Shown here: one piece after another, positions 12,341 through 30,154 of the stretch
How the letters are laid out: every line of letters starts with the position of its first letter
Position numbering within the stretch: the stretch's first letter is position 1
Virus record (IMG/VR): IMGVR_UViG_3300032294_002797
Span: 1 to 64,000 of that record
Length of the DNA: 64,000 nucleotides
Strand: one strand, 5' to 3'
Translations under genes and position numbers: made by a program
Notes under the pieces: generated by a model
Told to the model about the DNA's origin: nothing
The model's database searches: none
The model's input: only the letters and a program-made list of their open reading frames with translations

Positions 12341-12580
12341 TCATTGGGGGCCAAATCCAAATGTGGAAAATACCTTATCCTTAATACTCTTTAGTCGATC
12401 TATAAGTTTAAGATCAGTAGGAATAGTAACAGGAATACTAATAGGAATAGGGGCCGGAATAGGAACAACAACATTAATATCTTTTACTAGTTTAGTCGCA
12501 CACTTGTTACTACAAGATTTTTTCCCACACTTTTTCTTGGGCGAAGCTTTTTTGCTAATTTTCTTTTTCTTTTCTGACAT
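12341..12580 (-). CDS. Lys-rich hypothetical protein
   Basis: Basic N-terminus, Pro/Ile-rich middle. Confidence 0.6.
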   Translation of the reverse strand: MSEKKKKISKKASPKKKCGKKSCSNKCATKLVKDINVVVPIPAPIPISIPVTIPTDLKLIDRLKSIKDKVFSTFGFGPQ

Positions 12581-15887: not shown

Positions 15888-16170
15888 TCTTTAATCTCCA
15901 CAATATTTTCAGGACCAAAATCCCCAAAGAACTCAGGGTCGGTATATAGTTTATTATTCAGATAATTAGCGATCCTATCCTTATCATAGTCAAGATCATC
16001 GTCTACAATAAGTTCCATACTAATCTTAATTACTTTCATCAGGAACATCTCCAATTACTTCATCAATATACCAATCATAACCCTTATCATCCATCACCCG
16101 TAATTCCTCACTAAGAATCTCAATAGCATTAGTAGCCTCTTGACTATCAGGGTCTTTAATAGAGGGCTCG

Positions 16171-16353
16171 TCAAATATTACAACAATCTTCATGCTTTTT
16201 TCCCTTATTAATTTCAGTCATATAAATATTAGCAACCCTCAAATACATCTCACAATCAGTAAGATACTTCTCATTACCAGTATCCATATACCACTTGAGT
16301 CTTTGACTAGAACAATCTAAGGTATAATTAAGTGATCGAATAATATCCTCCAT
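16171..16353 (-). CDS. hypothetical protein
   Basis: Purine-rich RBS. Confidence 0.55.
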   Translation of the reverse strand: MEDIIRSLNYTLDCSSQRLKWYMDTGNEKYLTDCEMYLRVANIYMTEINKGKKHEDCCNI

Positions 16354-16502
16354 CCTCTTCCTTTCTGCACAATTAAGGTCCGTACAATAACAAAAACTGA
16401 ACCCATAGATATACTATCAGATAGTACAGAAAATTAGGAGGGGGTTCTAATATTTTCATAATACATGCTCCTTAGAACATATATTATAATATACCCCTAA
16501 AA

Positions 16503-16550
16503 CTCGCTGACTATCACTAAGACCGCCAAATCTGTAGGATTAGGTGAGAC
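16503..16550. repeat. dispersed repeat family B copy 2
   Basis: GCTGACTA-N14-AAATCTGTAGGATTA-N5-GAC. Confidence 0.8.
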
Positions 16551-16649
16551 TATAAAAATATCTTATATTGAGAACTAATCTCAACTAATTATTTACTATA
16601 TCTTTTACAACCTTGTTACTATTACAGTATACCACACTCTAAAGGTTGT

Positions 16650-16678
16650 CGCAAGTGGTTGACTCATAAGAACTTAGA
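16650..16678. repeat. family A single 29-bp site
   Basis: CGCAAGTGGTT-N7-AAGAACTTAGA. Confidence 0.6.
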
Positions 16679-16708
16679 ATCAGTAGTTCTTGTTACTATA
16701 TCAATATT

Positions 16709-16755
16709 CTCGCTGACTATCGCCAAGACCGCAAATCCGCTGGATTAGGCGAGAC
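16709..16755. repeat. dispersed repeat family B copy 3
   Basis: GCTGACTA-N13-AAATCCGCTGGATTA-N5-GAC. Confidence 0.8.
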
Positions 16756-16799
16756 AAATTAAAAGATTCTACTCTTTATATTTATAGTTAAGATTTTAA

Positions 16800-16828
16800 C
16801 CTAACCCTTTGTCCCATAAAGACTTACA
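16800..16828. repeat. family A single 29-bp site
   Basis: CCTAACCCTTT-N7-AAAGACTTACA. Confidence 0.65.
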
Positions 16829-16884
16829 TCCACACACCTATCCATTATATCGGCACTGTGGCGTTTTGTCTATAACTTTTTTGA

Positions 16885-16966
16885 CGTAACCCGTTGTGGC
16901 ACTTAAACTTACGACAAAATTTCGGGGCCCGATTTGCCCTAAGTCCTTTGATACCAAGCACTTACG
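16885..16966. repeat. 82-bp double-palindrome element (family A) copy 1
   Basis: 29+24+29 bp architecture. Confidence 0.9.
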
Positions 16967-16984
16967 TCAAATGATGTTGAATCA

Positions 16985-17031
16985 AAAGAGAAAGCCGCAG
17001 CCGGTTTCCCAGCCACGGCTCTCCCCCTTTT
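16985..17031 (-). terminator. intrinsic terminator
   Basis: Long GC-rich hairpin with GAAA-type loop and T-rich tail after the DUF932 gene. Confidence 0.7.
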
Positions 17032-17049
17032 CATCGTGACACGAAAAGA

Positions 17050-17997
17050 TCAGACGGCGTTCGCAAACTCCACTGCGGTATTGAGTGCCTTGAGATTATC
17101 AACTCCGTTCTGGCCGAACCAGAGAGAGTCAAGGCGATTGCTCACATTGCGACCCTTAGTATAATTCAGGTATTCATTGTAGCCGTTATAAGCAGCCCAC
17201 CATGTACCCCGAACCCCCGTTGCACTCTGCTTCGGGCCTTCAACAAGGGCGAGAATCTCGTCCATGATATTGCGGGTACGGGTTTTGATATCCTCGTCGG
17301 GAGTCTTATCAATACCCAGCACCACCTTCACATAACGCTTGATATCTGCTTGATTGAAGTCCTTACTGGCGAGGAACCGATACTGTTCCGCAGTAGCCTC
17401 AAACTGAGCATTGATATTGTCCATAATATCACGCACGTTTTCCAGATTGGTCTTGCTGGAACGAGTGTGACGAATACGAATCAACTGGCTATCCTTACTG
17501 GAGTGAGCAGCCGCAAGCGTATTCACGCACACGACGCGAATCGGAGTATATCCGACGCGAATCGACGTGGTGCCGTCATGGCTGTTCGACAGCAGAATGA
17601 ACTTGCTCACCTCGTCACCGGGAACAATCTCGCTGTTCGAGCGGTTGAGTTGAGCCAGAACCCAAACCTTTTCACCTTCGGAGAGAGAGCCAGCCGTATG
17701 CAACTGGCACTCACCAGCGTCGAGAAACGGCTGGAACCAATCGAAAGCGGCTTGATTCTGGAGCGGCGTATAACGCGGCCCCACAACACCCAGCACGCGA
17801 TTATCATCCTTACGATAGGTAGCCTTGGCATTGACCAATGTACCCTCTGCGGTAAACAAATCCTTTGTGCCAACTTCCCAATCCAGACCAGCAGCGGTAA
17901 TCGCTTCGCCGATAGAGGGATTTTCGTCCAACTGCGTACCCTCACCATGCCAAGGGGTAGCACCAACAAACATCATCTTTTCAACCATAGCAGGCAT
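17050..17997 (-). CDS. DUF932 family phage/plasmid-like protein
   Basis: PWHGEG, AGLDWEV, LGVVGPRYTPLQN, LLSNSHDGT, TPIRVVCVNT and GTWWAAYN motifs. Confidence 0.9.
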   Translation of the reverse strand: MPAMVEKMMFVGATPWHGEGTQLDENPSIGEAITAAGLDWEVGTKDLFTAEGTLVNAKATYRKDDNRVLGVVGPRYTPLQNQAAFDWFQPFLDAGECQLHTAGSLSEGEKVWVLAQLNRSNSEIVPGDEVSKFILLSNSHDGTTSIRVGYTPIRVVCVNTLAAAHSSKDSQLIRIRHTRSSKTNLENVRDIMDNINAQFEATAEQYRFLASKDFNQADIKRYVKVVLGIDKTPDEDIKTRTRNIMDEILALVEGPKQSATGVRGTWWAAYNGYNEYLNYTKGRNVSNRLDSLWFGQNGVDNLKALNTAVEFANAV

Positions 17998-18039
17998 AAT
18001 CAACCCTTTCGTGTTATCGTTCTTCGTTCAACTGTACTG

Positions 18040-18068
18040 ATTCTACACTATAGATATCGGCCTGTCAA
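18040..18068 (-). promoter_or_regulatory. sigma70-type early promoter with CCGATA box
   Basis: TTGACA-ggCCGATAtctatagtg-TAGAAT. Confidence 0.8.
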
Positions 18069-18096
18069 GCAGAAAACTTGCGAAAAAATTTCGTGA

Positions 18097-18178
18097 CGCA
18101 AACCCTTGTCGCACAAGCACTTACGTCAAAATCGGCCCGCCCGATTTGCCCTAAGTCTTTGCTGGGGCAGGATTTAGG
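18097..18178. repeat. 82-bp element copy 2
   Basis: 29+24+29; contains the stop codon of 18151..18657. Confidence 0.9.
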
Positions 18179-18657
18179 AGAGGCACCCGGAAATCCTTCT
18201 CAAACATTTTAACCGTGTCTGAGCGATAAGCACATTCGTCTGGCATATAGCAATAAACACCTACACACTGTGCTTTGGGACAATCTTCATGGATAGTATT
18301 TTTAATATGCCTAATGGTTGAGCCAGAGCAAACTAGATCATCAACAATAATGTATCTGAATGGAGTTACTCCCTCCATAGGAAAATCGCTGTAGCATTTC
18401 TCATCTGGCTTACGAATAAGAACAATATGTTTTTTCAGTAATTCAGCAATTTGTGGAACAACAACAAGTCCACTCACACCACAACAAGCAATACTATCAA
18501 ACTCGTTAGCAATCTTTCTTAGATCACAAACAGCCTTGATAATAACTTTGTTTCTGGCCTGATGATTTAATACCCTGCAAGTGTGGCTAGCACCTTGAAT
18601 AATCTTACCATCTTCGGTGCGTCTAAAGTCTTCAACCATATTATTCATCACATTCAT
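18151..18657 (-). CDS. phosphoribosyltransferase-like protein
   Basis: PRPP-binding motif YIIVDDLVCSGST; IACCGVSG; LIRK. Confidence 0.8.
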   Translation of the reverse strand: MNVMNNMVEDFRRTEDGKIIQGASHTCRVLNHQARNKVIIKAVCDLRKIANEFDSIACCGVSGLVVVPQIAELLKKHIVLIRKPDEKCYSDFPMEGVTPFRYIIVDDLVCSGSTIRHIKNTIHEDCPKAQCVGVYCYMPDECAYRSDTVKMFEKDFRVPLLNPAPAKT

Positions 18658-18748
18658 AAAAACGGACGGTACGATTTGAACGTACTAGAAAGAAAGGAAA
18701 GAAAGAATAGATACTTGTCCCACCAAGTTGCGTCCGTTCAGAAAAGAT

Positions 18749-18943
18749 TCAATCGTCAATTAGTTCGTCTGTGATATTATGATAATAGTTTTCCCAGCCA
18801 GCATTATCCATAGTCTCAGTCTCGTCTTCATCAAGACCAGCCCAAGGCTCATCAGTGCCATCATTATAGTAGCACTCGTCTTCATACAATTCTTCAGAAT
18901 TGTCTAGAATATTATGATAGTCATATTCAAAATCTCTACTCAT
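18749..18943 (-). CDS. acidic hypothetical protein
   Basis: AGGAG RBS; very Asp/Glu-rich. Confidence 0.6.
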   Translation of the reverse strand: MSRDFEYDYHNILDNSEELYEDECYYNDGTDEPWAGLDEDETETMDNAGWENYYHNITDELIDD

Positions 18944-18993
18944 CTCTTTTCTCCTTTGAAAACTATCATACACCAATCAGCCGGTTTGTCAAG

Positions 18994-19066
18994 TGGGGCC
19001 TGTGGGACTCGAACCCACGACCAAAGGTTTAAAAGACCCTTGCTCTACCAACTGAGCTAAAGCCCC
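18994..19066 (-). tRNA. trnK: tRNA-Lys(TTT)
   Basis: Full cloverleaf, anticodon loop CT-TTT-AA, TTCGA T-loop; own promoter. Confidence 0.95.
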
Positions 19067-19106
19067 TACTTTGTATAGTTTATCCTATCGCTTCCATATT
19101 GTCAAG

Positions 19107-19178
19107 TGACCCCAATGAGAATCGAACTCATATTAACAGATTGAAAGTCTGCTTTCCTAACCATTAGAAGATGGGGCC
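19107..19178 (-). tRNA. trnE: tRNA-Glu(TTC)
   Basis: Cloverleaf, loop CT-TTC-AA. Confidence 0.9.
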
Positions 19179-19309
19179 ACTCCCGCAACTCAACGTCAGC
19201 CTCCGTTTTGCTATTGTACATAATCGGTATTCTGTTGTCAAGACTTGAGTTGTTTTTGAATCGAAATGGTGTATAATGACTTAGTGAGTTGTACTACAGG
19301 AGTTCCATT

Positions 19310-19798
19310 ATGAAATGTATTAATTGTAATAAAGATACAGATAACCCTAAATTTTGCTCTAGATCATGCGGAGTGTCTTATAACAACAGAGTAAAACCAA
19401 AAAGAATTAAAAGAATGCAAACATGTATATTTTGTAAAAATCAATTTCATTCTTTACATAGTTATAATCAAAAATATTGTAATAAAAAATGTTTACAAAA
19501 TCATAGAGAGCACAATATCCAAACCAATGGTTTTGGAGAAGGTCATTATCATAATAATTCTATTAGAAAATACCTAATTAAAAAACATGGTAATCATTGT
19601 ATGATCTGTAACCAGTCTGGAGATAATTGGAACGGTAAGCCAATTACTTTAATTGTGGATCATATTGATGGTAAATCTAATAACAATAAACTAGATAACC
19701 TTAGAATTGTTTGTCCTAATTGCGATAGTCAACTACCTACATACAAAGCAAAAAACAAAGGAAATAGCACTCGTAGTTATTTTATAGTCCAAAAGTAA
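19310..19798 (+). CDS. HNH endonuclease inserted in tRNA cluster
   Basis: FCSRSC and YCNKKC Zn motifs; VDHIDGKSNNNKLDNLRIVCPNC; GGTGTA upstream; AGGAG RBS. Confidence 0.9.
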   Translation: MKCINCNKDTDNPKFCSRSCGVSYNNRVKPKRIKRMQTCIFCKNQFHSLHSYNQKYCNKKCLQNHREHNIQTNGFGEGHYHNNSIRKYLIKKHGNHCMICNQSGDNWNGKPITLIVDHIDGKSNNNKLDNLRIVCPNCDSQLPTYKAKNKGNSTRSYFIVQK

Positions 19799-19799
19799 A

Positions 19800-19874
19800 T
19801 AGGGCGTGGAGGAGTCGAACCTTCCCTTTTTTTCACCTTATAAGAGTGACTGCCACTACCGGCGGCAACGCCCC
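19800..19874 (-). tRNA. trnI: atypical tRNA-Ile(TAT)
   Basis: Acceptor GGGGCGT/ACGCCCT, anticodon arm TCACT-CTTATAA-GGTGA, TTCGA; short D-loop and T-stem mismatch. Confidence 0.65.
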
Positions 19875-19924
19875 ATATGAGTATCATACACTATCTATCG
19901 TCAGTTGTCAACCCCAATCTTTAG

Positions 19925-20009
19925 CGGAATCTGAGGGATTCGAACCCCCGGAGGATTTCTCCTCGTCGGTTTAGTAAACCGGTGCATTAGACCACTCTGC
20001 CAAGATTCC
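19925..20009 (-). tRNA. trnS: tRNA-Ser(ACT)
   Basis: Type II cloverleaf with long variable arm, G73, loop TT-ACT-AA. Confidence 0.85.
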
Positions 20010-20012
20010 AAA

Positions 20013-20084
20013 CTGGCGAGACAGGATTCGAACCTGTAACCTAGCGGTTAACAGCCGCTTGCACTACCGTTGTGCTACCCGCCA
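20013..20084 (-). tRNA. trnN: tRNA-Asn(GTT)
   Basis: Cloverleaf, AGCGG-CTGTTAA-CCGCT. Confidence 0.92.
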
Positions 20085-20089
20085 TCAAT

Positions 20090-20161
20090 TTCCGGAGCAT
20101 GGGTACGATCCATGAATAAACGGACCAAAGCCGTTTGTGATACCAGTTTCACCACTCCGGA
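20090..20161 (-). tRNA. trnQ: tRNA-Gln(TTG)
   Basis: Cloverleaf, AACGG-CTTTGGT-CCGTT; atypical T-loop ATCGTAC. Confidence 0.8.
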
Positions 20162-20164
20162 GCA

Positions 20165-20235
20165 AGCCCACAACTAGAATCGAACTAGTATTAGATGATT
20201 ACAAATCAACTGTATTACCATTATACTATGCGGGC
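20165..20235 (-). tRNA. trnT: tRNA-Thr(TGT)
   Basis: Cloverleaf, loop TT-TGT-AA. Confidence 0.85.
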
Positions 20236-20240
20236 GAAGC

Positions 20241-20429
20241 CTACATATCATAGTCCTGACGCCAACCCCTGTCAATATCACGACGGGTACGCTGACGCTT
20301 GGGACGGTTATCAAACAACGTATTACGTTCTTCTCGGTGTCCAGTAGCCAACTCCCACGGTTGCTTGACCTTGACCTTGATCTTATTGTGGTTGCGTTGG
20401 GGTCGAGTATCGTCGTTGAGGTGGTGCAT
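20241..20429 (-). CDS. basic hypothetical protein
   Basis: Arg-rich small ORF; start uncertain. Confidence 0.55.
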   Translation of the reverse strand: MHHLNDDTRPQRNHNKIKVKVKQPWELATGHREERNTLFDNRPKRQRTRRDIDRGWRQDYDM

Positions 20430-20637
20430 AGTCAAACCATTGTCCATTATCGTGTAAATAAAAAACCTTGTCAATATTAGGATCGTACGCCATTAAACAG
20501 TATTGTACCGGATAAACTGGTTTTGTCAACTGTTTTTGTGGAAGTTTAGGAAGTTTAATATCGCCCTTTTGATAGTCTTTTACACCAGTATAGGCTAAAC
20601 CTAATAGTGCAACGATTACCCCAATCCATTGGATCAT
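20383..20637 (-). CDS. membrane-anchored hypothetical protein
   Basis: AGGAGA RBS, N-terminal TM segment; follows promoter 20660-20688. Confidence 0.7.
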   Translation of the reverse strand: MIQWIGVIVALLGLAYTGVKDYQKGDIKLPKLPQKQLTKPVYPVQYCLMAYDPNIDKVFYLHDNGQWFDYAPPQRRYSTPTQPQ

Positions 20638-20659
20638 CAATTCTCCTTTGCGTCTAACT

Positions 20660-20688
20660 AGCATACCATACTTATCGGCAATTGTCAA
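20660..20688 (-). promoter_or_regulatory. sigma70-type early promoter with CCGATA box
   Basis: TTGACA-attgCCGATAagtatgg-TATGCT. Confidence 0.8.
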
Positions 20689-20705
20689 GCGACTCTTTAG
20701 TTTTT

Positions 20706-20787
20706 CCTAAGTACTTGAGACATAAGCACTTACGTCAAATTTTCGCCGCCCCGTTCGTCCTAAGTGGTTACCCACAAAGGACTTAGG
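20706..20787. repeat. 82-bp element copy 3
   Basis: 29+24+29. Confidence 0.9.
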
Positions 20788-20794
20788 AAGAGTT

Positions 20795-21031
20795 TTATTC
20801 TTCTTCCAGGCTCCAACCGGCTTTTCTTACCACCTTAGTAGTTTTATATACTTTAGTATCTGGTAATGCAGTAGCGTAGTCTTTGAATCCTCTTTCATCA
20901 AGATAAAAATGTTCGTCGAGCGTGTCAAATTTATTAGTCTCCCATAATGCTGCTACAGCAGCGTCCAGAGGTTTTTGATTAGTAGAGTAAATAAGTTGTA
21001 GTGTGCCAGATTGTATATAATACTTAGCCAC
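20795..21031 (-). CDS. hypothetical protein
   Basis: GTG start with GGAGG RBS, overlapping the upstream stop. Confidence 0.65.
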   Translation of the reverse strand: MAKYYIQSGTLQLIYSTNQKPLDAAVAALWETNKFDTLDEHFYLDERGFKDYATALPDTKVYKTTKVVRKAGWSLEEE

Positions 21032-21623
21032 TATACCCTCCACCACATTTGTAGCATGAGCAATATTCATATTCGTCCCCGCCCGTTCCTTCGGCCCAAC
21101 AAGGTTCCTCATACTCACCAATATCACCAAGGCTTTCACGACCAACATCTACAATAACCAATACTTTATGCTTACCTCTTTTTACATATCCAAGATTAGC
21201 ATTATGAGCATCTGTATAGGTTATCCCAAACATTTCTTCAATATCAACTATCATTCTGTTGATAACTTCGAAATTTTCGCACAGGTCATTCTCATAACAG
21301 TAGCCATCGCATTGCCTACACTTGAGCGGTGAAGCAATTTCGGTCAAGTATCCCCACTCGCTCAGTACCAATTTTTCCTCGGCTTTATAACCACCCTTGC
21401 CGTCTGATACTGCAAAATAGTTAGGAATCCGTATTCTGCAAACTGGACTATAAACACGCGGAGTAAAAGTACACGGTTCAGATAGTTCGCTCTGTATATG
21501 ATGAGCAAACTCGGCTAAACTTTTATTAGGAAAACTTTTGAATCCGTATCGGCTACCTTTCATTTTATAGAAAGAGTTTTTGCTTCCCCCATCGGCATAT
21601 TTACCAATATATTTAGTAGTCAT
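21024..21623 (-). CDS. protein kinase-like fold protein
   Basis: Gly loop DGGSK, beta3 Lys (GFKSF), catalytic DAHNAN, DFG-like DVG. Confidence 0.65.
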   Translation of the reverse strand: MTTKYIGKYADGGSKNSFYKMKGSRYGFKSFPNKSLAEFAHHIQSELSEPCTFTPRVYSPVCRIRIPNYFAVSDGKGGYKAEEKLVLSEWGYLTEIASPLKCRQCDGYCYENDLCENFEVINRMIVDIEEMFGITYTDAHNANLGYVKRGKHKVLVIVDVGRESLGDIGEYEEPCWAEGTGGDEYEYCSCYKCGGGYSG

Positions 21624-21632
21624 TACATTCTC

Positions 21633-22343
21633 CTAATGAGAGGGAAACAAAACATTAGCCAGACCACGAACACAAAGATCACAGTGTACGCTATTTTTGC
21701 TTTTTGTACAAGTCACAACGCCACGACCACGACGGATTTCCGGGCAAGTGATAAACTTCTCACCCTCTAATACAACGAGTTTAGGCAACGCTTCTCTCCA
21801 TGCGGCGGCTTTAGCCTTGCCGCGAGGACGCTTGGGAGCGATTTTAGTATCACTATCGCACCATGCGAAAAGTTTGAAACCAGCCGCTTTCGCTTGTTTC
21901 ATATCTTCACCGTCGTGGATACTAGCATACATATTTATATACTTGCCAAGTTGAGTAGACAATTTAGTATCATAAATATGGGTATAAGCCCACATAGTCG
22001 GCAGACTACCGCCACTGGCAAGAATACTCTCACAAGCCCACAATACATTATCTACATACTCATGGTCGAGTTCGCCATACTTGAAAAAGTCTCCACGCTC
22101 ATGCCAGCGAACATCTTTATTTTTCTTGACAGCATCCACAAGCATGGCACGGATACGATTTTTTTCCGTGATAAGATTTTGCATACCGGCAGGACGCACA
22201 CCGGGATAGATATTTTCCAAGTCCTCGGCATAGCATCCGTTCCCGAGAAAATCACAATCGCTAGGGCAAGTATCGCCAACGGGGCGACTCACTACGATGC
22301 AATTTTCTTTGCCCAACTTGTCATTACCATTTGCTGTTTTCAT
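21633..22343 (-). CDS. Gp88-like Cys-rich (putative Fe-S) phage protein
   Basis: TCPSDC...GCYA, VRWHERGDF, WAYTH and C-terminal CP...C...CxxC. Confidence 0.7.
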   Translation of the reverse strand: MKTANGNDKLGKENCIVVSRPVGDTCPSDCDFLGNGCYAEDLENIYPGVRPAGMQNLITEKNRIRAMLVDAVKKNKDVRWHERGDFFKYGELDHEYVDNVLWACESILASGGSLPTMWAYTHIYDTKLSTQLGKYINMYASIHDGEDMKQAKAAGFKLFAWCDSDTKIAPKRPRGKAKAAAWREALPKLVVLEGEKFITCPEIRRGRGVVTCTKSKNSVHCDLCVRGLANVLFPSH

Positions 22344-22364
22344 ATTCTTTCTCCTGTGCTACTG

Positions 22365-22393
22365 ATTCTACATTAGAGTATCGGCAGTGTCAA
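22365..22393 (-). promoter_or_regulatory. sigma70-type early promoter with CCGATA box
   Basis: TTGACA-ctgCCGATActctaatg-TAGAAT. Confidence 0.8.
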
Positions 22394-22421
22394 GAGAAAA
22401 ACTTTGGCAAAAATATTTTGA

Positions 22422-22503
22422 TGCAAGTCCTTGCTGCATCAGCAGTTACGTCAAAATCGGCCCCGCGAATTCGCCCTAAGTCTTTATGCTGCAACAACTT
22501 AGC
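22422..22503. repeat. 82-bp element copy 4
   Basis: 29+24+29; abuts the tRNA-Asp 3' end. Confidence 0.9.
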
Positions 22504-22576
22504 GAGAGCGACGGGACTTGAACCCGCAACCTCCAGCGTGACAGGCTGGCGATCTAACCAATTGATCTACGCTCCC
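22503..22576 (-). tRNA. trnD: tRNA-Asp(GTC)
   Basis: Cloverleaf, CCAGC-CTGTCAC-GCTGG. Confidence 0.95.
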
Positions 22577-22579
22577 AAA

Positions 22580-22651
22580 TAGCCCCAAGAGGAATCGAAC
22601 CTCTAACCAGTGCTTAGAAGGCACTTGTTATATCCATTTAACTATAGGGCC
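22580..22651 (-). tRNA. trnR: tRNA-Arg(TCT)
   Basis: Cloverleaf, AGTGC-CTTCTAA-GCACT. Confidence 0.92.
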
Positions 22652-22717
22652 ATAATACCGATAGCCGCCAGTTATTCACCAGCGGCATCTCGGTTTATTA
22701 TAGCATATCGTAGATGC

Positions 22718-22966
22718 TTAGGCAACAGCCTCGGCTTCCACCTTGGCATTGTGAGCGTCACCGGCCTGCTCGGCAGTAACACCCGTGACGCGGGCACGCC
22801 ACACCTTATAACCCTGCTCGCTGAAACTCTTGATTTCGCCAGCCTTGACATTAGCATGAACATCACCAGGCAGCGAACCACTCAGACACTCACGAATCGA
22901 ATCCACAACCGAGTCACGATCAAGTTCATCGGCAACAATATCAACCGCAAACGCAAACTTCTTCAT
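22718..22966 (-). CDS. hypothetical protein
   Basis: GGAGA RBS; GC-rich codon usage; tandem promoters at 23011-23039 and 23099-23127. Confidence 0.75.
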   Translation of the reverse strand: MKKFAFAVDIVADELDRDSVVDSIRECLSGSLPGDVHANVKAGEIKSFSEQGYKVWRARVTGVTAEQAGDAHNAKVEAEAVA

Positions 22967-23098
22967 GTTACATTCTCCAAAAGTGTTACAGTTCCAATCG
23001 TCATAGTATCAGTATACGCTACAGATACTTACTTGTCAAGAGTGCCATGAGGGTTTCTATTGTTGGCTTCGTGGCAGCGTCTTGCGTCGTACTCTATC

Positions 23099-23127
23099 AT
23101 TCTACAGTATAGTATCGGCATTGTCAA
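23099..23127 (-). promoter_or_regulatory. sigma70-type early promoter with CCGATA box
   Basis: TTGACA-atgCCGATActatactg-TAGAAT. Confidence 0.8.
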
Positions 23128-23165
23128 CCCAGCACTTGAGTTAGCCTCAAAAAATTTTTAGTCTT

Positions 23166-23247
23166 CCTAAGTCGTTGAGTATCAAGCACTTACGTCGAAT
23201 TTTCGCGGCCCGCCTCGCCCTAAGTTCTTTAGGGACAAGGCTTTAGG
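23166..23247. repeat. 82-bp element copy 5
   Basis: 29+24+29; abuts the stop at 23248; contains an exact IHF consensus TATCAAGCACTTA. Confidence 0.9.
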
Positions 23248-23619
23248 TTACGAGAGATAACCCTCACAACCCAAACCCGCAAGATCACGCAGCAGATTTT
23301 CCGCCGCTTCGGGAGTCTTGAGCGTGATGCTCTGCTTGGTGTTTGTAGCAGCAGGATACCACCTATCGCCCTTCCAACCACCCACCAGAAAATCCGTCCA
23401 CTCCTTACTTTCCTTCAGACCCCAGCCGGTGTGGAGTCGAATAGCCTTGATGCAAGGAATCCGGTTGTCAAGACTCATACCGCCCGTGATAGTAACGGTC
23501 TTGAGTTGATTCACGCCCAACGCAACCTCAAAAGCATTCACGATCCTGTCGTAAATGTCACGGTTGCAATTGTTGGACAGTTCAAAAGCCTCACGGACGC
23601 TCAGTTGCAGATTAATCAT
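23248..23619 (-). CDS. ribosomal protein bL12 (L7/L12) C-terminal-like domain protein
   Basis: RIPCIKAIRLHTGWGLKESKEW resembles KIxVIKxVRxxTGLGLKEAK. Confidence 0.7.
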   Translation of the reverse strand: MINLQLSVREAFELSNNCNRDIYDRIVNAFEVALGVNQLKTVTITGGMSLDNRIPCIKAIRLHTGWGLKESKEWTDFLVGGWKGDRWYPAATNTKQSITLKTPEAAENLLRDLAGLGCEGYLS

Positions 23620-24098
23620 ATTCCAAAACTTTCTGTATATTTAGGTTCAATCTCGTAAATGCCGTCAAAATTTCCGTTTCGTTCTTCTAGGACATATACC
23701 TGTTTACCATCAGTAATCAAGGTATCGTATTCACTATTGTCCCAAATGAACTCATTGTTATCACTTTCTCGTCGCCAGTGTGGATCACGAAGCGGATTAT
23801 AATACAACTTTTCCAGATTGTCAACAGGTAAAGAGGGATAAAAATCCTTACGCAACATAAACTCATTACATCTAACCCATCCACTCACATCATGCACACC
23901 AGCCTCAAATACCTGTTTAGCCTTATTCGGCCTATTCCACAACTTACAACCCCGCATCTCCAATTGATATTCAGACGGATCAAAATAGCAAACCTCCACG
24001 GTTTTGCCACCTTGCTTAATTTTCAGTTGCCAAAACATATAGTTAGGCCCGTTACTCAAATGAAAGCGAACTTCGCCGTATGGTGGTCTAGGTTTCAT
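23616..24098 (-). CDS. hypothetical phage protein
   Basis: 160-aa ORF; ATG only about 6 nt below a TAGAAT -10, so probably leaderless. Confidence 0.75.
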   Translation of the reverse strand: MKPRPPYGEVRFHLSNGPNYMFWQLKIKQGGKTVEVCYFDPSEYQLEMRGCKLWNRPNKAKQVFEAGVHDVSGWVRCNEFMLRKDFYPSLPVDNLEKLYYNPLRDPHWRRESDNNEFIWDNSEYDTLITDGKQVYVLEERNGNFDGIYEIEPKYTESFGI

Positions 24099-24145
24099 AT
24101 CGACATTCTACCTTAAAAACTTTAATTGTCAAGTACACCTTAGTC

Positions 24146-24192
24146 TGGCTGACTATCAGCAACGGCAGCAAATCCGTAGGATTAGGCAAGAC
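24146..24192. repeat. dispersed repeat family B copy 4
   Basis: GCTGACTA-N14-AAATCCGTAGGATTA-N5-GAC. Confidence 0.85.
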
Positions 24193-24279
24193 AAGCAGAT
24201 TGGGTTATGCCATACTCGGCCTTACATTTAACCGTGGCTTCTTTGATATCATTCTGCCAGCGGCCCTCATCTACTTATC
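24190..24279 (-). ncRNA. candidate small RNA (~90 nt)
   Basis: Own promoter 24287-24315; 11-bp closing helix with two G-U pairs on minus strand; no ORF. Confidence 0.5.
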
Positions 24280-24333
24280 GTGTTCTAGTATACCTCTATT
24301 ATCGGATATTGTCAAGGTTAGTCTTTAAAAAAT

Positions 24334-24415
24334 CCTAAGTGCTTGTCCCATAAGAAGTTACGACAAATTTTAGCCGCCGAATTTGCCCTAAGTCCTTATC
24401 CTACAATGAGTTACC
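24334..24415. repeat. 82-bp element copy 6
   Basis: 29+24+29. Confidence 0.9.
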
Positions 24416-24515
24416 GATATACCACCAATGGCATTGTTGGCAAAATATCCAGATTATACCATTTTTGTCATATTTCCAACACAATTCGTCACAAGCCCCA
24501 CACGGGCAAATATCA

Positions 24516-24689
24516 CTAAGAGTTTTCATATACAAACTTTATATATCTATCTACAAGTTCTGATACAGCAATCTCATGAGTACTGATTAGTTCTTTTACT
24601 TGGCTTACATTATGCTTATTTACAGCAGCCATCTTATTTCTGAAAAAACTCAGAATAAGAATCATAGCCTTATCACGATCATTAACCAT
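24516..24689 (-). CDS. hypothetical protein
   Basis: Start moved to MVNDRDK, overlapping the upstream stop. Confidence 0.55.
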   Translation of the reverse strand: MVNDRDKAMILILSFFRNKMAAVNKHNVSQVKELISTHEIAVSELVDRYIKFVYENS

Positions 24690-24939
24690 GTGGATAATCC
24701 TTTGGGTAATCAGTCTCTGGACGTTGTGGCTTGGGTTGTCCCTCGTATGGCATCCACCACGGAGCATCCATACGATCTACTATACCGGGACTTTCTTCAC
24801 AAATCAAGATATGTTCACTCACAGGATCGTCCCAATGAATCTCATATCTTCCCTGCCACACACCAATATACTCGCCAAAATAGTAAACTTTCTGACCATT
24901 AATAGGGCGACGAGGACCGAAAAAACTAATCCATTCCAT
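24682..24939 (-). CDS. hypothetical protein
   Basis: MEWIS...P...WWMP pattern common in small phage proteins. Confidence 0.7.
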   Translation of the reverse strand: MEWISFFGPRRPINGQKVYYFGEYIGVWQGRYEIHWDDPVSEHILICEESPGIVDRMDAPWWMPYEGQPKPQRPETDYPKDYPHG

Positions 24940-25133
24940 TAAGATTTTACCTTATGATTAAAAGCCGTATCATATGCTTCCTCTGCCTCTTCGATTTTTT
25001 TCAACACGCTATTTTGCATCTTCTGAAACTGGGCTTTATTGCCCCAGTAATAACCTTCTTCAATATGGTCATGGACAAGGCTCAAGAGATAATCAAGTTC
25101 AGTCTTAGTAAATTCAATAGTTTCGGTTTTCAT
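24939..25133 (-). CDS. hypothetical protein
   Basis: TAATG coupling. Confidence 0.65.
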   Translation of the reverse strand: MKTETIEFTKTELDYLLSLVHDHIEEGYYWGNKAQFQKMQNSVLKKIEEAEEAYDTAFNHKVKS

Positions 25134-25366
25134 TACCAATTCTCCGGCATAGAAATCTCATCAAAACCAATATAGCATATCACTAACGAATTGTCAAACT
25201 GATCCCATTCCAAAGCACCATCATCATATTCTCCATGCCACCAATCACCCCAACCACCTTCTTCTTGATTCCAAGTAAGATCAATAGGAGACGAATATCC
25301 CTTCACGCAACAAAGATATTTCTGATTCACAATAGGATCACCATAATGCCAGTTCATTATTTCCAC
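25133..25366 (-). CDS. hypothetical protein
   Basis: Packed ORF. Confidence 0.65.
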   Translation of the reverse strand: MEIMNWHYGDPIVNQKYLCCVKGYSSPIDLTWNQEEGGWGDWWHGEYDDGALEWDQFDNSLVICYIGFDEISMPENW

Positions 25367-25518
25367 CTAAAACTAAAGTGAGTAGCCTCGTTATCACAAA
25401 TAAACGTAAAATATGCCAGAAAGAACATAGTCAAAGATGGGAAAAATAAAATGATTTTACGAAAGATTCTCATCATGTTTCCTTTTCCACCATTATACCA
25501 TTCTTTATCGTCAAGTCA

Positions 25519-26040
25519 AGTACCGACACACTGATAGTTTTACGAATAACACTCGGTACTATGTTAGTTCAACCTCAAGGTTTTACCTTATCTAAGGAAA
25601 CTATCAGCAGATTTATAACCAGCGAATCTTTTACGCCCCGATTCTATAATCCATATTAGCCTAAATACTCTAGTGCGAATATCTTCGGGAATATGGAAAC
25701 CGTCCACGGAACTCCTCCCTAGAATCGAGTTAAACTTCCGGAATGTTTTTCGATTCATCTGGCTCTTGGAAACGGTTACTGGTATATTTTATATGGCAGA
25801 GTTTTTAGCCTATCACAAAGGATGGGAAGGGCGAACTCTTTTAATCCTAACCTATTATCTAGGAACCATAATATTGTTTATGGGTGTCACCTATTTCTAC
25901 TCATGCTATCGCATTTTCGGAGGCCACATGGAAGGATCGTCACCGGTAACTCCTCTTCGCTCTGTTGTGCTTTGCCTCGTCATACGGAAAACCGTCACCC
26001 ATAAAGTATTGGTCGTGGTGAGGACGCTATCCCCCATAGA
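25519..26040 (-). ncRNA. candidate large structured ncRNA (~520 nt)
   Basis: Own promoter 26049-26076; no minus-strand ORF of 60 aa or more; several 7-10 bp perfect helices and a 3' pseudoknot. Confidence 0.6.
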
Positions 26041-26076
26041 TTGGTATTACTATACAGCATATAACCTTGCTGTCAA

Positions 26077-26260
26077 CCCCGGCGATGATTACGTCTTCGC
26101 TGAACGGGAGGTTTATCGTAATAGGTTATCCAATCTAGTCCCTGAGCATGGACCCACGAAAGTTTGTCATAGTACGCTAGGTTTAGTGCTGCTTCTCTAT
26201 CCTAGCACGGCTTAGTATGATGTTATCTCTGGCACTCAACCGCTATGATTTGTTTTGTCT
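26077..26260 (-). ncRNA. candidate structured RNA (~185 nt)
   Basis: Own promoter 26270-26297; multi-stem junction; no ORF of 60 aa or more. Confidence 0.45.
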
Positions 26261-26326
26261 TACTCAGTCATTCTACAATATATTATCGACTTGTCAAGAG
26301 GGTTTCTTGAAAAAATATTTTTTTGA

Positions 26327-26408
26327 TGTAAGGTGTTGGAGGATAAAGACTTACGACAAATCCGGCGGCGCAAATTCGCCCTAAGTCCCCTTGGGCAAAG
26401 AACTTAGA
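26327..26408. repeat. 82-bp element copy 7
   Basis: 29+24+29. Confidence 0.9.
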
Positions 26409-26419
26409 GCGAACCGCGT

Positions 26420-26902
26420 TTAGGTAGTTGCTTCTTCTGTATCGTCTTTGAAGAATTCTTCCATACCAAACTCATTCCACAATGCGACAGGAATCATATC
26501 CTTACTCGGATATTCCACATAGTTATCAGCACCATTATCCCAAATACCACAGAAAGCCATGCCCGGCTCCCAATAACTAGCCTTTACATCATATCCCAAC
26601 TCAACCAGTTTATCATACAAACCAATAGGAGGACTCCACGCACTATCAAACGAACAACTTACTTGGTTTCCTACCCTAGTAGCCTTCAAGCCGTGATATT
26701 CTTCCCTATCTGTACCCATATCGGCCCCAATATCCCATTTGGTTCCCCAATTATCTATTTGCCAGCCGTACCAATCTTCACCTTCTGGTAGAGGCAGAAA
26801 TTCTTCACAAGCCTTACCCAGATTATAGGCTTTCTCAAATCGGTCAACCATAGAAACATCAGTATGCTCAACCGTCAATTTATTCAAACACCAATTAGGC
26901 AT
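26420..26902 (-). CDS. DUF1281/YubB-like ferredoxin-fold protein
   Basis: MPNWCxNxL, WYGWQIDNWGTKWD, FDSAWSPP and EPGMAFCG motifs. Confidence 0.8.
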   Translation of the reverse strand: MPNWCLNKLTVEHTDVSMVDRFEKAYNLGKACEEFLPLPEGEDWYGWQIDNWGTKWDIGADMGTDREEYHGLKATRVGNQVSCSFDSAWSPPIGLYDKLVELGYDVKASYWEPGMAFCGIWDNGADNYVEYPSKDMIPVALWNEFGMEEFFKDDTEEATT

Positions 26903-26912
26903 CTTTTTTCCT

Positions 26913-27071
26913 TTATTCTATTTCCAAAATCTCATAGACCCCAATCTTAGGATCCATACAATGTTCATCATATTCTTTTTCTTGACGAACCCACTCCCTA
27001 GCATCCTCTATATCGTCAAAATCATAGTTTCTACTTGACCCATTTTCAGTTCTAATCACACGATAGACCAT
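26913..27071 (-). CDS. hypothetical protein
   Basis: Start moved to MVYRVI (GAGG RBS, promoter 27094-27122). Confidence 0.6.
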   Translation of the reverse strand: MVYRVIRTENGSSRNYDFDDIEDAREWVRQEKEYDEHCMDPKIGVYEILEIE

Positions 27072-27135
27072 ACAGACCTCTCTTTCTGCACCAATCATAT
27101 CATAATACAGACTATTTGTCAAGAGCCCATTATTT

Positions 27136-27182
27136 TGGCTGACTATCGCCCATAACCGCAAATCCGTAGGATTAGGAGGGAC
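27136..27182. repeat. dispersed repeat family B copy 5
   Basis: Consensus match; contains the stop of 27172..27333. Confidence 0.85.
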
Positions 27183-27333
27183 AGGATATACGTTCAACTA
27201 AAATATAGTCGCCATATTTTTCTTTGGCTTTTCGTAGAGCATCATATTCGCTCATAGCAACAACGTATCCAACAAAACGATTGTGTTGGAAAACTCGCCA
27301 TGAAATACCGGAATAGCAAAATGTAGTGTTCAT
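27172..27333 (-). CDS. hypothetical protein
   Basis: Probably leaderless, under promoter 27340-27367; ends CPS-stop inside repeat B. Confidence 0.6.
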   Translation of the reverse strand: MNTTFCYSGISWRVFQHNRFVGYVVAMSEYDALRKAKEKYGDYILVERISCPS

Positions 27334-27386
27334 AGAGTTATTGTACCGTATTATCGGCAAGAGTCAAGAGCAAACTTTAGATTATT

Positions 27387-27468
27387 CGTAAAGTCTTGTG
27401 GTATAAGGAGTTAGATCAAATTTTGCGGCGCGCCCTCGCCCTAAGTGCTGCCGTAGCAACAACTTAGG
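27387..27468. repeat. 82-bp element copy 8
   Basis: 29+24+29. Confidence 0.9.
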
Positions 27469-27496
27469 GGAAGGGTTCAACTTTTTAGATTATGAA

Positions 27497-27904
27497 TCAA
27501 GCAAACATAAGTGCCAGATTCGTGGAAAACAGTGCCTTACCACCAATTGGCTTACGCACGTTCGTGGTACGTTCTGCATAGAAGTTACGCACAGTACCAT
27601 TCGGCATTTCGCAAGTCACAAGATGGCGAGTACGCTGAAACTGCGGATCGTTTGCACGATACCGGCTACGGACATTCAAACGGCGGATACTATTATCATC
27701 CAACGTGTGAACTTCCAGAACCTTAGCAAGATAACGCTCAGGATCGCCGTGATGGGGCTGCTCATAAATGAAGTTATAAACTTCGCCGGGAGCAGCATTC
27801 CCCAGACTACCATGAACACCACCATAGATGCTATACAGCGTAAAAGCAATCAGAAGACCAGCAACAACAGCAAACAAACCACCAACCAGAATAAAATCGT
27901 TCAT
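27497..27904 (-). CDS. membrane-anchored protein, possible WYL/SH3-like domain
   Basis: N-terminal TM; C-terminal VRNFYAER resembles WYL RxFxxxR (weak). Confidence 0.6.
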   Translation of the reverse strand: MNDFILVGGLFAVVAGLLIAFTLYSIYGGVHGSLGNAAPGEVYNFIYEQPHHGDPERYLAKVLEVHTLDDNSIRRLNVRSRYRANDPQFQRTRHLVTCEMPNGTVRNFYAERTTNVRKPIGGKALFSTNLALMFA

Positions 27905-28003
27905 ATGAACCCTTTTTGTTGTGAAAACTTTCCCTTATGTCTCACGATTCTACACTACTTATCGGCAAGAGTCAAGTGCTAAGTTTAGAAAAAATATTTT
28001 CGC

Positions 28004-28085
28004 CATAAGTCGTTGCAGCATAAGGAGTTGCGTCAAATTTTGCGGCACCCGCTCGTCCTAAGTGCTTACACACCAAGGGCTTACG
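28004..28085. repeat. 82-bp element copy 9
   Basis: 29+24+29; contains the stop at 28081. Confidence 0.9.
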
Positions 28086-28287
28086 TCAGTACGACAGGCT
28101 CGCTCCTGAACGAACATACAGGCTGGCCGCTTGCCGCAACCAAAACGTCAAGCATTGCACCAACCTGTTCCATACGTTCAACAGGCTGATCCATATCGTA
28201 CTCGGGAATCTCAAGAACAAATTCACGATCCAAACCCACATCACCATTATCGGTTTCGATCACAATATCAAAAAAACGGTGTTGCAT
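28081..28287 (-). CDS. hypothetical protein
   Basis: Single-gene cassette with promoter 28311-28339 and GAGG RBS. Confidence 0.7.
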   Translation of the reverse strand: MQHRFFDIVIETDNGDVGLDREFVLEIPEYDMDQPVERMEQVGAMLDVLVAASGQPVCSFRSEPVVLT

Positions 28288-28366
28288 CTAATCCTCTCTT
28301 TCGTATGCTAATCCTACACTATACTTATCGGCTTGTCAAGCGGGTCTCTTGAAAAATTTTATTTGA

Positions 28367-28448
28367 CGTAAAGCGTTGAGACATAAGGAGTTACGTTAAA
28401 TTTTGCGGCGCCCCCTCGCTCTAAGTTCTTTGGCGGTAAGGGTTTGCG
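28367..28448. repeat. 82-bp element copy 10
   Basis: 29+24+29; contains the stop at 28421. Confidence 0.9.
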
Positions 28449-28972
28449 ACAGGAGGATAAAACTTCATAAAATTCTCAATATGATCGTCATATGCCATAT
28501 TCATATTGTCACAAGTTTCATCAAAACCAATAGAATATCCTTCCTTACCTCTCTTACGGCTATATTCCTGAACATACCTAGTAACATACTTGCTTTCTGT
28601 CCATTTGAAAATCGTACCTTTTGGAGTAATAAAAACCATGAACAAAATATCAAAAAGTTCAGGTTTGATTTTTTGCAAAGTATAATACTTATATTTGTTT
28701 TGATGCAAAGTCAATTTAGCGGTTTTTACTTCGCACCTAATACTATCATTCAAAAGAATATCAAAAATTTTACCGTGACCGTGCCGTTTCACATCATACT
28801 TAGCCCTACTCAAACGATCACACATCAGGCACTCACCAGCATCCCCCATTCCGGTAGAATCCAGATTGGAGATTTTCCAGCATAGATAATTTTTCTTACG
28901 CGAATAAAAATTGTCTGGACGGGAAATTTTGAGATTATGCTTGATCCTGTTGAAATCTCTCATCGTAAACAT
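28421..28972 (-). CDS. PD-(D/E)xK restriction-endonuclease-like protein
   Basis: GDAGE...FDILLN...CEVKTA catalytic pattern; AGGAGG RBS. Confidence 0.7.
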   Translation of the reverse strand: MFTMRDFNRIKHNLKISRPDNFYSRKKNYLCWKISNLDSTGMGDAGECLMCDRLSRAKYDVKRHGHGKIFDILLNDSIRCEVKTAKLTLHQNKYKYYTLQKIKPELFDILFMVFITPKGTIFKWTESKYVTRYVQEYSRKRGKEGYSIGFDETCDNMNMAYDDHIENFMKFYPPVANPYRQRT

Positions 28973-29058
28973 TGCTTTTCCTCCTTATTGGAATACGCTT
29001 AGTCTACAATGCTTATCGGCTAATGTCAATAGATTTAGCCATAAAATTATTTTTTGAT

Positions 29059-29140
29059 CATAAGTCTATATCCCATAACAACTTACGTCAAATTTTCGCC
29101 GCCCCGCTCGCCCTAAGTGCTTACGCACCAAGGGTTTGCG
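29059..29140. repeat. 82-bp element copy 11
   Basis: 29+24+29. Confidence 0.9.
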
Positions 29141-29147
29141 GCGAGTT

Positions 29148-29381
29148 TTATTCAAAGTCTACGAAAATAACTTGATTATATCCACGAGGCTTAATAGTAA
29201 GGCTCTCGCTGTAATCGTAGGTATCGGCCTTTACACCCGTCATACCCGCGAGCAACTTGGCCTTTCGCACAATATTACGCTGAGACGCCCCGCTATTAAT
29301 AGCAAACTCATAACGGTTAGCCCAAGAGTAGTTTGCCTCACCATTAAATGTGTCGGTCTGCGTAACGGTAACCTTCATCAT
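29148..29381 (-). CDS. hypothetical phage protein
   Basis: TDTFNGEANYSW; start moved to MMKVTV. Confidence 0.7.
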   Translation of the reverse strand: MMKVTVTQTDTFNGEANYSWANRYEFAINSGASQRNIVRKAKLLAGMTGVKADTYDYSESLTIKPRGYNQVIFVDFE

Positions 29382-29495
29382 CTTATTATTCCTTTTAGAG
29401 AGAAAAGTGTCGATCCAATTTTTAACGTTTTTAGTAAGCATTTTAACAATTCTGTGTATAATATAGTATACATCAACTATCAGGAGATGAATACT

Positions 29496-29897
29496 ATGTC
29501 AAAATATGATCCTCAAGAATACCAAAGAAACAAACAGGCCTATTTAGAAAGACAGAAACGATACAAGAACAAACACAAGGATACCATCAATGAGCGTCAA
29601 CGTCAATACCGTGAGTCAAATAAATCCCAACTCAATGTTTATGCCAATAGGCGTAAAAATAAAATTAGAGAAAAATATGATGAATATATGCAAGATAAAA
29701 AATGTAGCCATTGTGGATACTCTGATCCTAGATCGTTAGTTTGGCATCATACTGATTCGTCTAACAAAAAGAATGGCGTTGTTCAATTAGTTGGCAAGAA
29801 ACATGGATGGGATACTATTTTAGCAGAAATTAATAAGTGTATATGTTTATGCCATAATTGCCACAATATATTGCATAATCACCAATCATCTCCGTAG
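29496..29897 (+). CDS. HNH endonuclease
   Basis: CSHCG...LVWHH...EINKCICLCHNCH; AGGAG RBS; TGTGTA late-type motif upstream; start moved from 29136. Confidence 0.85.
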   Translation: MSKYDPQEYQRNKQAYLERQKRYKNKHKDTINERQRQYRESNKSQLNVYANRRKNKIREKYDEYMQDKKCSHCGYSDPRSLVWHHTDSSNKKNGVVQLVGKKHGWDTILAEINKCICLCHNCHNILHNHQSSP

Positions 29898-30154
29898 TCG
29901 GAATCGTGGTTATAGTATTCGTCCACACCCCATCCACATGAGCCGAACGCAGATTCAGCATCACCATCCATACTATCATCGTACGAATCATCCCAACCGT
30001 TCTCCAAATCTTCGGCGGTAACATCACCGTAAAAATCTTTATGGTCATCATACAGGTACTCGGCCAAAAGGGCGTCACTAGGATCATGCTCAACAACCAT
30101 ATCATCATCCTCATAAGCGTTATCGGGATCGAACAGTGGATCAGGGTGGCTCAT
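29879..30154 (-). CDS. highly acidic protein
   Basis: Strongly Asp/Glu-rich; AGGAGA RBS. Confidence 0.7.
   Translation of the reverse strand: MSHPDPLFDPDNAYEDDDMVVEHDPSDALLAEYLYDDHKDFYGDVTAEDLENGWDDSYDDSMDGDAESAFGSCGWGVDEYYNHDSDYGDDW

Follow-up and report, generated by a model that had tools for sequence, protein, structure and literature searches.

The DNA analysed here, referred to as the window, is a stretch of 64,000 nucleotides forming positions 1 to 64,000 of the IMG/VR virus record IMGVR_UViG_3300032294_002797. The whole record (genome G000) has 223,302 bp and 34.9% G+C, is estimated to be complete and belongs to a jumbo phage whose closest terminase matches are only about 26% identical. 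Sequencing runs containing this stretch come from 12 studies and are mostly labelled freshwater, lake-water or algae metagenomes, and the virus is thus regarded as a lake phage. Nine tRNAs were identified by ARAGORN in the entire genome, all located on the minus strand between 18,993 and 22,652 and all reading A/U-rich codons. One of them is a tRNA-Ser with the anticodon ACU, which is both the sole tRNA-Ser and the sole tRNA with adenosine at wobble position 34 (A34). The tRNA genes and associated features are as follows.

18993-19066, minus strand: tRNA-Lys(UUU), downstream of tRNA-Ser, with a promoter-like site before the gene (ARAGORN)
19106-19178, minus strand: tRNA-Glu(UUC), downstream of tRNA-Ser, with a promoter-like site before the gene (ARAGORN)
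19799-19875, minus strand: tRNA-Ile(UAU), downstream of tRNA-Ser, with a promoter-like site before the gene (ARAGORN)
19925-20009, minus strand: tRNA-Ser(ACU), 85 nt, type II, G73, no encoded CCA (ARAGORN, Rfam, sequence)
19973-19975, minus strand: the anticodon ACU, its A34 being the complement of plus-strand T19975; the A is kept in 67 related phage loci
20013-20084, minus strand: tRNA-Asn(GUU), immediately upstream of tRNA-Ser (ARAGORN, Rfam)
20090-20161, minus strand: tRNA-Gln(UUG) (ARAGORN, Rfam)
20165-20235, minus strand: tRNA-Thr(UGU) (ARAGORN, Rfam)
20247-20275, minus strand: candidate sigma70-type promoter TTGACA-17-TATGAT, directly upstream of the Thr/Gln/Asn/Ser run (consensus scan, 11 of 12 matches)
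22502-22576, minus strand: tRNA-Asp(GUC) (ARAGORN, Rfam)
22579-22652, minus strand: tRNA-Arg(UCU), reading AGA, the codon for which an inosine-modified Ser tRNA would compete (ARAGORN, Rfam)

The tRNA-Ser(act) was called by ARAGORN on the minus strand at 19924-20009, and Rfam model RF00005 matches 19925-20009 over its full length with 52.3 bits (E 1.8e-9), above the gathering score of 29 bits. A preliminary description of this stretch had reported a well-formed type II tRNA-Ser with the loop TT-ACT-AA, leaving the strand unstated; ARAGORN, Rfam and the sequence agree with it, the loop reading in this way on the minus strand, and the ACU anticodon at this locus is confirmed. The acceptor stem is GGAAUCU/AGAUUCC with discriminator G73, and the D stem has 3 bp (G10-C25, C11-G24, A12-U23). 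The anticodon stem CCGGU/ACCGA contains a C27.A43 mismatch and closes the loop U32 U33 A34 C35 U36 A37 A38. The variable arm, present with varying sequence in all members of the family described below, consists of a 5-bp stem and a 4-nt loop, and the T arm is GGGGG-UUCGAAU-CCCUC. SerRS does not read the anticodon, and the identity rules of tRNA-Ser have been established for E. coli. The identity set (G73, G1-C72, G2-C71, A3-U70, C11-G24 and a long variable arm) is complete in the sequence of the window tRNA; G1-C72 and G2-C71 are nearly invariant across the ACU family, two members of which carry U73. Since SerRS ignores the anticodon and the identity elements are present, serine identity would be expected to survive a change from G34 to A34. 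Position 34 alone distinguishes the anticodon arm from that of tRNA-Ser(GCU) isoacceptors, and the A34 in place of G34 thus makes the window tRNA a derived variant rather than a strict member of that group.

The Thr-Gln-Asn run (20013-20235) upstream of tRNA-Ser has spacers of 3-5 nt, and the order Thr-Gln-Asn-Ser is kept in relatives; this arrangement suggests that the four tRNAs are probably made as a single transcript. Near-consensus sites of the form TTGACA-17-TAnnnT were found 30 times, compared with 12.1 +/- 3.2 in shuffled sequences. Thirteen such promoter-like sites lie on the minus strand within 18500-23300, several of them directly before single tRNA genes, and this dense array argues for a host with the classical sigma70 promoter type.

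Several other observations were made in this part of the genome. The tRNA-Ile(UAU), 77 nt long and kept in 13 related loci, is predicted to read AUA without lysidine; in Rfam its stretch gives only a sub-threshold tRNA-Sec-like match of 25.5 bits. Between tRNA-Glu and tRNA-Ile, a 162-aa ORF with a weak HNH match is encoded on the plus strand at 19310-19798. This region is missing from related contigs of other runs (no depth in X5; in X6 a joint from 19277 to 19701), and the ORF looks like a mobile homing-endonuclease insertion within the tRNA cluster. The cluster is contained in a region (16000-36000) of 40-44% G+C, flanked by DNA of 31-34% G+C. In contigs of two lake metatranscriptome libraries, 22796-23085 has a depth of 20-36, much above the rest of the 5.9 kb compared, which may reflect a highly transcribed early region or DNA carry-over. 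Farther along, a single plus-strand ORF of 4,690 codons (47946-62018) lies in the structural-gene block and is followed by a tail-fibre-like gene at 62020-63186.

Relatives of the tRNA were collected by scanning IMG/VR with the 20-base anticodon arm, position 34 being left open. Fifty-three contigs were recovered, with A34 in 50, G34 in two (both of 63-65% G+C) and C in one unrelated non-Ser tRNA. The 50 exact-arm A34 loci come from 48 metagenome sample ids. In total, 67 credible IMG/VR phage loci with tRNA-Ser(ACU) were obtained, comprising 31 distinct sequences; locus L294 is left out of this number, its 'Ser(act)' and 'Thr(agt)' calls having been discounted as poor predictions. The tRNA had been treated earlier as a singular oddity, with a check of relatives proposed: that check found A34 throughout these loci, so that the odd A34 stands and the singularity does not. 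An identical tRNA is found in different flanks in contig L011, an independent contig. In contigs of other runs (fragmentary contigs of four runs in Logan), no difference at 19973-19975 is among the differences listed; the metatranscriptome contigs do not reach across the anticodon. tRNA-Arg(UCU) accompanies 30 of 68 ACU loci, despite the short spans of those loci.

Sequence variation within the family respects the tRNA structure. Between two and four types of pair are seen at each of acceptor pairs 3-7, D pair 12-24 and four T-stem pairs among the 21 distinct exact-arm sequences (after trimming), and none is broken. A variant group in large relatives carries the arm GCAGCGGUUUACUAAACCGCC, in which the 27:43 C.A mismatch is replaced by G-C, with A34, acceptor stem and T arm as in the window. 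Compensatory changes are thereby found across the ACU sequences in the acceptor, D, T and anticodon stems, and this compensation, together with the spread of the loci, is at the sequence level what a working tRNA kept by purifying selection would show. The nearest relative of every ACU sequence is another ACU sequence (0.8-0.99 identity, against 0.7-0.84 to the best GCU). One A-to-G transition at position 34 would restore the ordinary GCU, and A34 is held between lineages with acceptor stems that have diverged at most positions. In a tree with position 34 masked, the ACU sequences form two clades and a singleton. The free tree needs two changes, and a single phage ACU clade is not rejected by the AU test (p 0.50). 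Repeated independent origins of A34 therefore received no support; as the AU test leaves one clade standing, few origins followed by long retention are claimed rather than convergence. The view of A34 as a general phage trait was also withdrawn, since a looser scan with a 14-base core gave at least 59 tRNA-Ser(GCU) and at least 12 ACU among the 120 viral matches listed. Phage-borne GCU is thus common, and A34 marks particular tRNA lineages.

Both forms can occur in one phage, as in two contigs that carry tRNA-Ser(GCU) and tRNA-Ser(ACU) about 4.2 kb apart (L033:3262-3350 and 7478-7562; L053:8243-8331 and 12459-12543). In the sister phage G012 (complete, 223 kb), the syntenic slot Asn-Ser-Trp is occupied by a tRNA-Ser(GCU) whose body is different (G012:133936-134024, equal to L271:7437-7525). 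A viral contig of 62% G+C contains tRNA-Ser(GGA) and tRNA-Ser(ACU) in tandem (L039:1643-1820), so the ACU form is not limited to AT-rich phages. Contigs of the second ACU clade (L018:9946-10299, L019:1312-1686, L025:2963-3316) encode a permuted two-piece tmRNA with the tag ANDNYSPEMALAA or ANNNYAPEMALAA. Permuted two-piece tmRNA is typical of Alphaproteobacteria, and its presence hints at this group as hosts of the second-clade phages.

The same 20-base arm was also searched in one-genome-per-species bacterial assemblies. At least 119 of 119 serine arms have G34, one further match is an unrelated tRNA, and no A34 is present among the matches listed. The owners of the G34 arm include Chlorobiota, Ignavibacteriota, Bacteroidota, Planctomycetota, Verrucomicrobiota, Gemmatimonadota, Caulobacter and others. 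The 14-base core, with R at position 34, was also scanned directly against 1,203 genomes belonging to the phyla of three arm owners. Matches were found in 362 of the 1,203 genomes, with more than 310 sites that all have G among the matches listed, 53 matches of one scan lying outside the list. In these samples of genomes, tRNA-Ser(ACU) was not found in any cellular genome searched, judging by the matches listed, in line with the earlier statement that bacteria normally decode AGY with GCT. Among 50,697 GenBank phages no record contains the exact arm. No cultured phage was found with tRNA-Ser(ACU), the relatives checked carrying Ser(GCU) or Ser(UGA). Among cultured phages, cyanophage S-SKS1 has the tRNA closest to that of clade B, with 81.6% identity. 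No report of a phage Ser(ACT/ACU) tRNA was found in the open-access literature. As far as the sequences searched go, tRNA-Ser(ACU) is so far seen in phages only.

The phage tRNA and bacterial tRNA-Ser(GCU) share the type II cloverleaf, G73, G1-C72, G2-C71, A3-U70 and C11-G24, and their 20-nt anticodon arms, GCACCGGUUU-N-CUAAACCGAC, are identical, with A at position 34 in the phage and G in cells. The phage tRNA differs further in its shorter variable arm, in its D-loop (GGUCUAA, as opposed to GGCUGAA in the bacterial tRNA) and in having no encoded CCA. By analogy with data from E. coli, its reading would be expected to be confined to AGU, where the bacterial tRNA reads both AGC and AGU. The ACU family, apparently restricted to phages, would thus descend from the common bacterial tRNA-Ser(GCU), whose arm it has kept letter for letter.

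Known substrates of TadA/ADAT are tRNA-Arg ACG, tRNA-Leu AAG in some Bacilli and the eukaryotic TAPSLIVR tRNAs, and to our knowledge inosine occurs only in three- and four-codon boxes. With these substrates the phage tRNA shares A34, C35, a 7-nt loop, U33, A37 and A38, but U36 and U32 stand where they have G36 and C32, and its loop does not match that of tRNA-Arg2 (C32 U33 A34 C35 G36 A37 A38). In E. coli, Schmitt, Tittle and Fisk (PMC11066159) tested every A34 anticodon on an orthogonal tRNA. The ACU version, on an archaeal tRNA-Tyr body with C32 where the window tRNA has U32 and in a host that may differ from that of the phage, reassigned 9.4% of AGU and 0.36% of AGG, with AGC and AGA below detection (PMC11066159). 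Sequencing of cDNA from this tRNA showed only A at position 34 and no inosine, so E. coli TadA leaves ACU untouched, and in two other anticodon contexts, AAG and AUG, changes at position 32, 37 or 38 blocked TadA (PMC11066159). The earlier suggestion that inosine could misread AGA is weakened by these results.

Natural A34 that is thought to be unmodified has been reviewed for Mycoplasma tRNA-Thr(AGU) and yeast mitochondrial tRNA-Arg(ACG) (PMC11066159). The phage tRNA resembles these in its genome-encoded A34, but they serve four-codon boxes in reduced genomes, where loose reading does no harm or is of use, whereas the phage tRNA is encoded by a virus and must discriminate within a split box (AGY Ser / AGR Arg). 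In the mechanism proposed here, the gene would be transcribed by a host RNA polymerase of the sigma70 type together with tRNA-Thr, Gln and Asn, and CCA would be added by a host enzyme, as none is encoded. Host SerRS would be expected, from the identity elements, to charge the product with serine. If the orthogonal tRNA of E. coli is a guide, unmodified A34 would then form a Watson-Crick pair with AGU and read essentially nothing else. Decoding capacity for AGU would be raised, and the reading of AGC would be left to a G34 tRNA, as a rule that of the host. We judge it somewhat on the probable side of even that the locus encodes a functional phage tRNA-Ser, changed from GCU to ACU and conserved in a phage family, which is charged by host SerRS and acts as an unmodified AGU-only decoder supplementing the G34 tRNA.

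Codon usage was examined in the 185 long ORFs of the phage genome, which contain 1351 AGT, 620 AGC and 1298 AGA codons. AGT accounts for about 22 per 1000 codons (22.3) and for 27% of Ser codons, and is 2.2 times commoner than AGC. The preliminary description had noted AGT as common in the late genes; it is common, but late genes as a special case were rejected, AGT/AGY being 0.69 in these and in other genes alike. AGC is not depleted, either in the window phage or in ACU loci generally, and with 620 AGC codons a G34 tRNA is thus still needed. The ACU tRNA is more consistent with an addition to the host tRNA, for AGU, than with a substitute for it, and the two contigs carrying GCU and ACU together agree with this reading of the sequences.

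Comparisons between loci give a mixed picture for the earlier proposal of a codon-bias adaptation. In its favour are the A/U-rich codons read by the phage tRNAs and the more frequent use of AGU in ACU loci than in GCU loci (19.7 vs 13.7 per 1000, p 1.5e-7, a test inflated by treating related phages as independent). Against it stands the AGU:AGC ratio. AGU/AGY is 0.65 in ACU loci and 0.63 in GCU loci (p 0.09), and the residual AGU share relative to other NNY boxes gives p 0.79, both tests again treating related phages as independent. In the sister genomes, AGU and AGC occur at 22.4 and 10.5 per 1000 in G012 (GCU) and at 22.3 and 10.2 per 1000 in G000 (ACU), with AGU shares of 0.681 and 0.685, and the share in the ACU-bearing G015 is lower than in G000, at 0.579. 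Co-variation of AGU:AGC with the anticodon was therefore dismissed, being seen neither across loci nor between sister genomes. High AGU demand is shared by all the compared phages. As the AGU:AGC ratio does not follow A34, it fails to explain why A34 is retained in some lineages, and codon tuning is, on these counts, a plausible but weakly supported cause of A34.

Other explanations of A34 were considered. That A34 is an artefact of sequencing or assembly, or that the gene is a pseudogene in decay or a neutral variant without consequence, is exceedingly improbable and was rejected on the comparative evidence: one G-to-A transition suffices to create ACU, but A34 is present in all 67 loci and in exact-arm loci from 48 sample ids, the identical tRNA recurs in L011, no pair is broken in stems that all show compensatory changes, A34 has been retained through deep divergence, and the Rfam score is well above threshold. 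Alternatively, A34 might serve counter-defence: a nuclease of the host or of a rival phage, or a modifying toxin, would recognise G34 of tRNA-Ser(GCU), and the phage copy would escape through the changed base. That phage tRNAs resist tRNA-targeting defences is established (PMC10264068), and the phage tRNAs studied by van den Berg et al. (2023) and those of T5 that act against PARIS and retron PtuAB also differ from the host tRNA within the anticodon loop. The restriction of A34 to phages, with the rest of the arm identical to the cellular one, speaks for such a role, as does its retention whatever the AGU:AGC usage, so that something besides the codon ratio may hold A34. The known escapes, however, are loop changes outside the anticodon that leave decoding intact, whereas here the change lies inside the anticodon, alters decoding and is the only differing position of the arm. 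Furthermore, tRNA-Ser(gct) is listed as not targeted, and tRNAs cleaved inside the anticodon are rarely carried by phages (van den Berg et al., PMC10264068). A limited literature search found no nuclease acting on tRNA-Ser(GCU), and most phage tRNA-Ser(NCU) in the broader scan keep G34 (at least 59 vs at least 12 among the matches listed). An unmodified A34 tRNA does not read AGC and could not rescue translation after destruction of the host tRNA, with stalling at the 620 AGC codons as the outcome. Escape from an anticodon nuclease, as proposed in the preliminary description, thus finds no direct support, and counter-defence in general is an unlikely explanation.

Rather unlikely too is the deamination of A34 to inosine, by a relaxed host TadA or by a divergent zinc deaminase of the phage. 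The resulting ICU would read AGU and AGC, thereby serving the 620 AGC codons and making the host tRNA-Ser(GCU) dispensable, and tRNA-Arg(UCU), a frequent companion of ACU loci, would out-compete it at AGA. The phage gene in question lies outside the window.

G000:208280-208738 (equal to L178:1420-1878), minus strand: divergent zinc deaminase of 152 aa with the CDA fold and invariant H69, E71, P107, C108 and C111 (HxE, PCxxC)

Homologues of this protein number 558 in lake metagenomes and are found in 206 viral contigs. Its conservation in the phage lineage favours a role in deamination, as 11 ACU-bearing genomes encode it, with identities as low as 37%, and some members are named TadA by JGI's pipeline. 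It falls below the Pfam cut-off and has no PHROG. The AlphaFold model (pLDDT 82) belongs to the cytidine-deaminase superfamily with no preference within it, the top Foldseek matches being blasticidin-S and cytidine deaminases. In VIA-align, guanine deaminase, Mycoplasma tRNA deaminase, dCMP deaminases and TadA are tied at Z 8.2-9.4; the tRNA deaminase of M. capricolum (Z 9.3) and TadA (Z 8.2-8.4) are within this tie, but the protein is not told apart from guanine, cytidine, blasticidin or dCMP deaminases by structure searches. The genes around it concern DNA and nucleotides: UvdE is one, and distant homologues have a nucleoside deoxyribosyltransferase-like gene as neighbour. It is present in G012, whose tRNA-Ser is GCU, and was not found in the clade-B ACU carrier G005. 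As a candidate phage TadA it was set aside, being unassignable by Pfam, NCBIfam, PHROGs, PDB sequence and profile search, Foldseek and VIA-align, and co-occurring with GCU in G012. A second candidate, the 166-aa deaminase at G000:140017-140517, proved to be an ordinary dCMP deaminase (PHROG 174, E 1e-31). Inosine is also disfavoured by the tRNA itself, since E. coli TadA leaves ACU unmodified and U32 and U36 replace C32 and G36 of tRNA-Arg2 (PMC11066159). It would misread AGA, the main Arg codon of the phage with 1298 codons, and would make the pair redundant in the two phages that keep GCU and ACU. A two-part module, in which tRNA-Ser(ACU) and the phage's own 152-aa deaminase would together produce I34 and allow AGY to be read without host tRNA-Ser(GCU), for example when this is scarce or attacked, is quite improbable; if true, both its I34 tRNA in a split codon box and its virus-encoded wobble deaminase would be the first of their kind.

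The reading of the ACU tRNA as an unmodified supplement for AGU relates it to the tRNA clusters by which phages such as T4, T5 and S-SKS1 supplement codons. Like these, the cluster of the window contains tRNAs for A/U-ending codons (Lys UUU, Glu UUC, Ile UAU, Gln UUG, Thr UGU, Arg UCU) in a large AT-rich phage; here, in contrast, the supplement consists of a wobble base changed to a form that cells avoid. That phages carry codon-supplementing tRNAs is already known, and what is new is, by comparison with these systems, best read as an ACU decoder dedicated to AGU. In every domain of life, tRNA genes with a plain wobble adenosine are described as very scarce (PMC11066159). The known natural cases come from four-codon boxes in reduced genomes, with next to none described from split boxes; here, a conserved A34 family in the split box of Ser AGY and Arg AGR is present in many uncultured phages of lakes and other aquatic habitats. 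'tRNA-Ser(ACT)' calls in phage genomes should accordingly not be dismissed as annotation errors. If A34 is modified, or protects against defence, the finding would be more unusual still. If it is unmodified, the family would offer a natural system for learning how wobble A decodes and why cells avoid it, and would indicate that phages can tune the tRNA pool with anticodons that their hosts never use.
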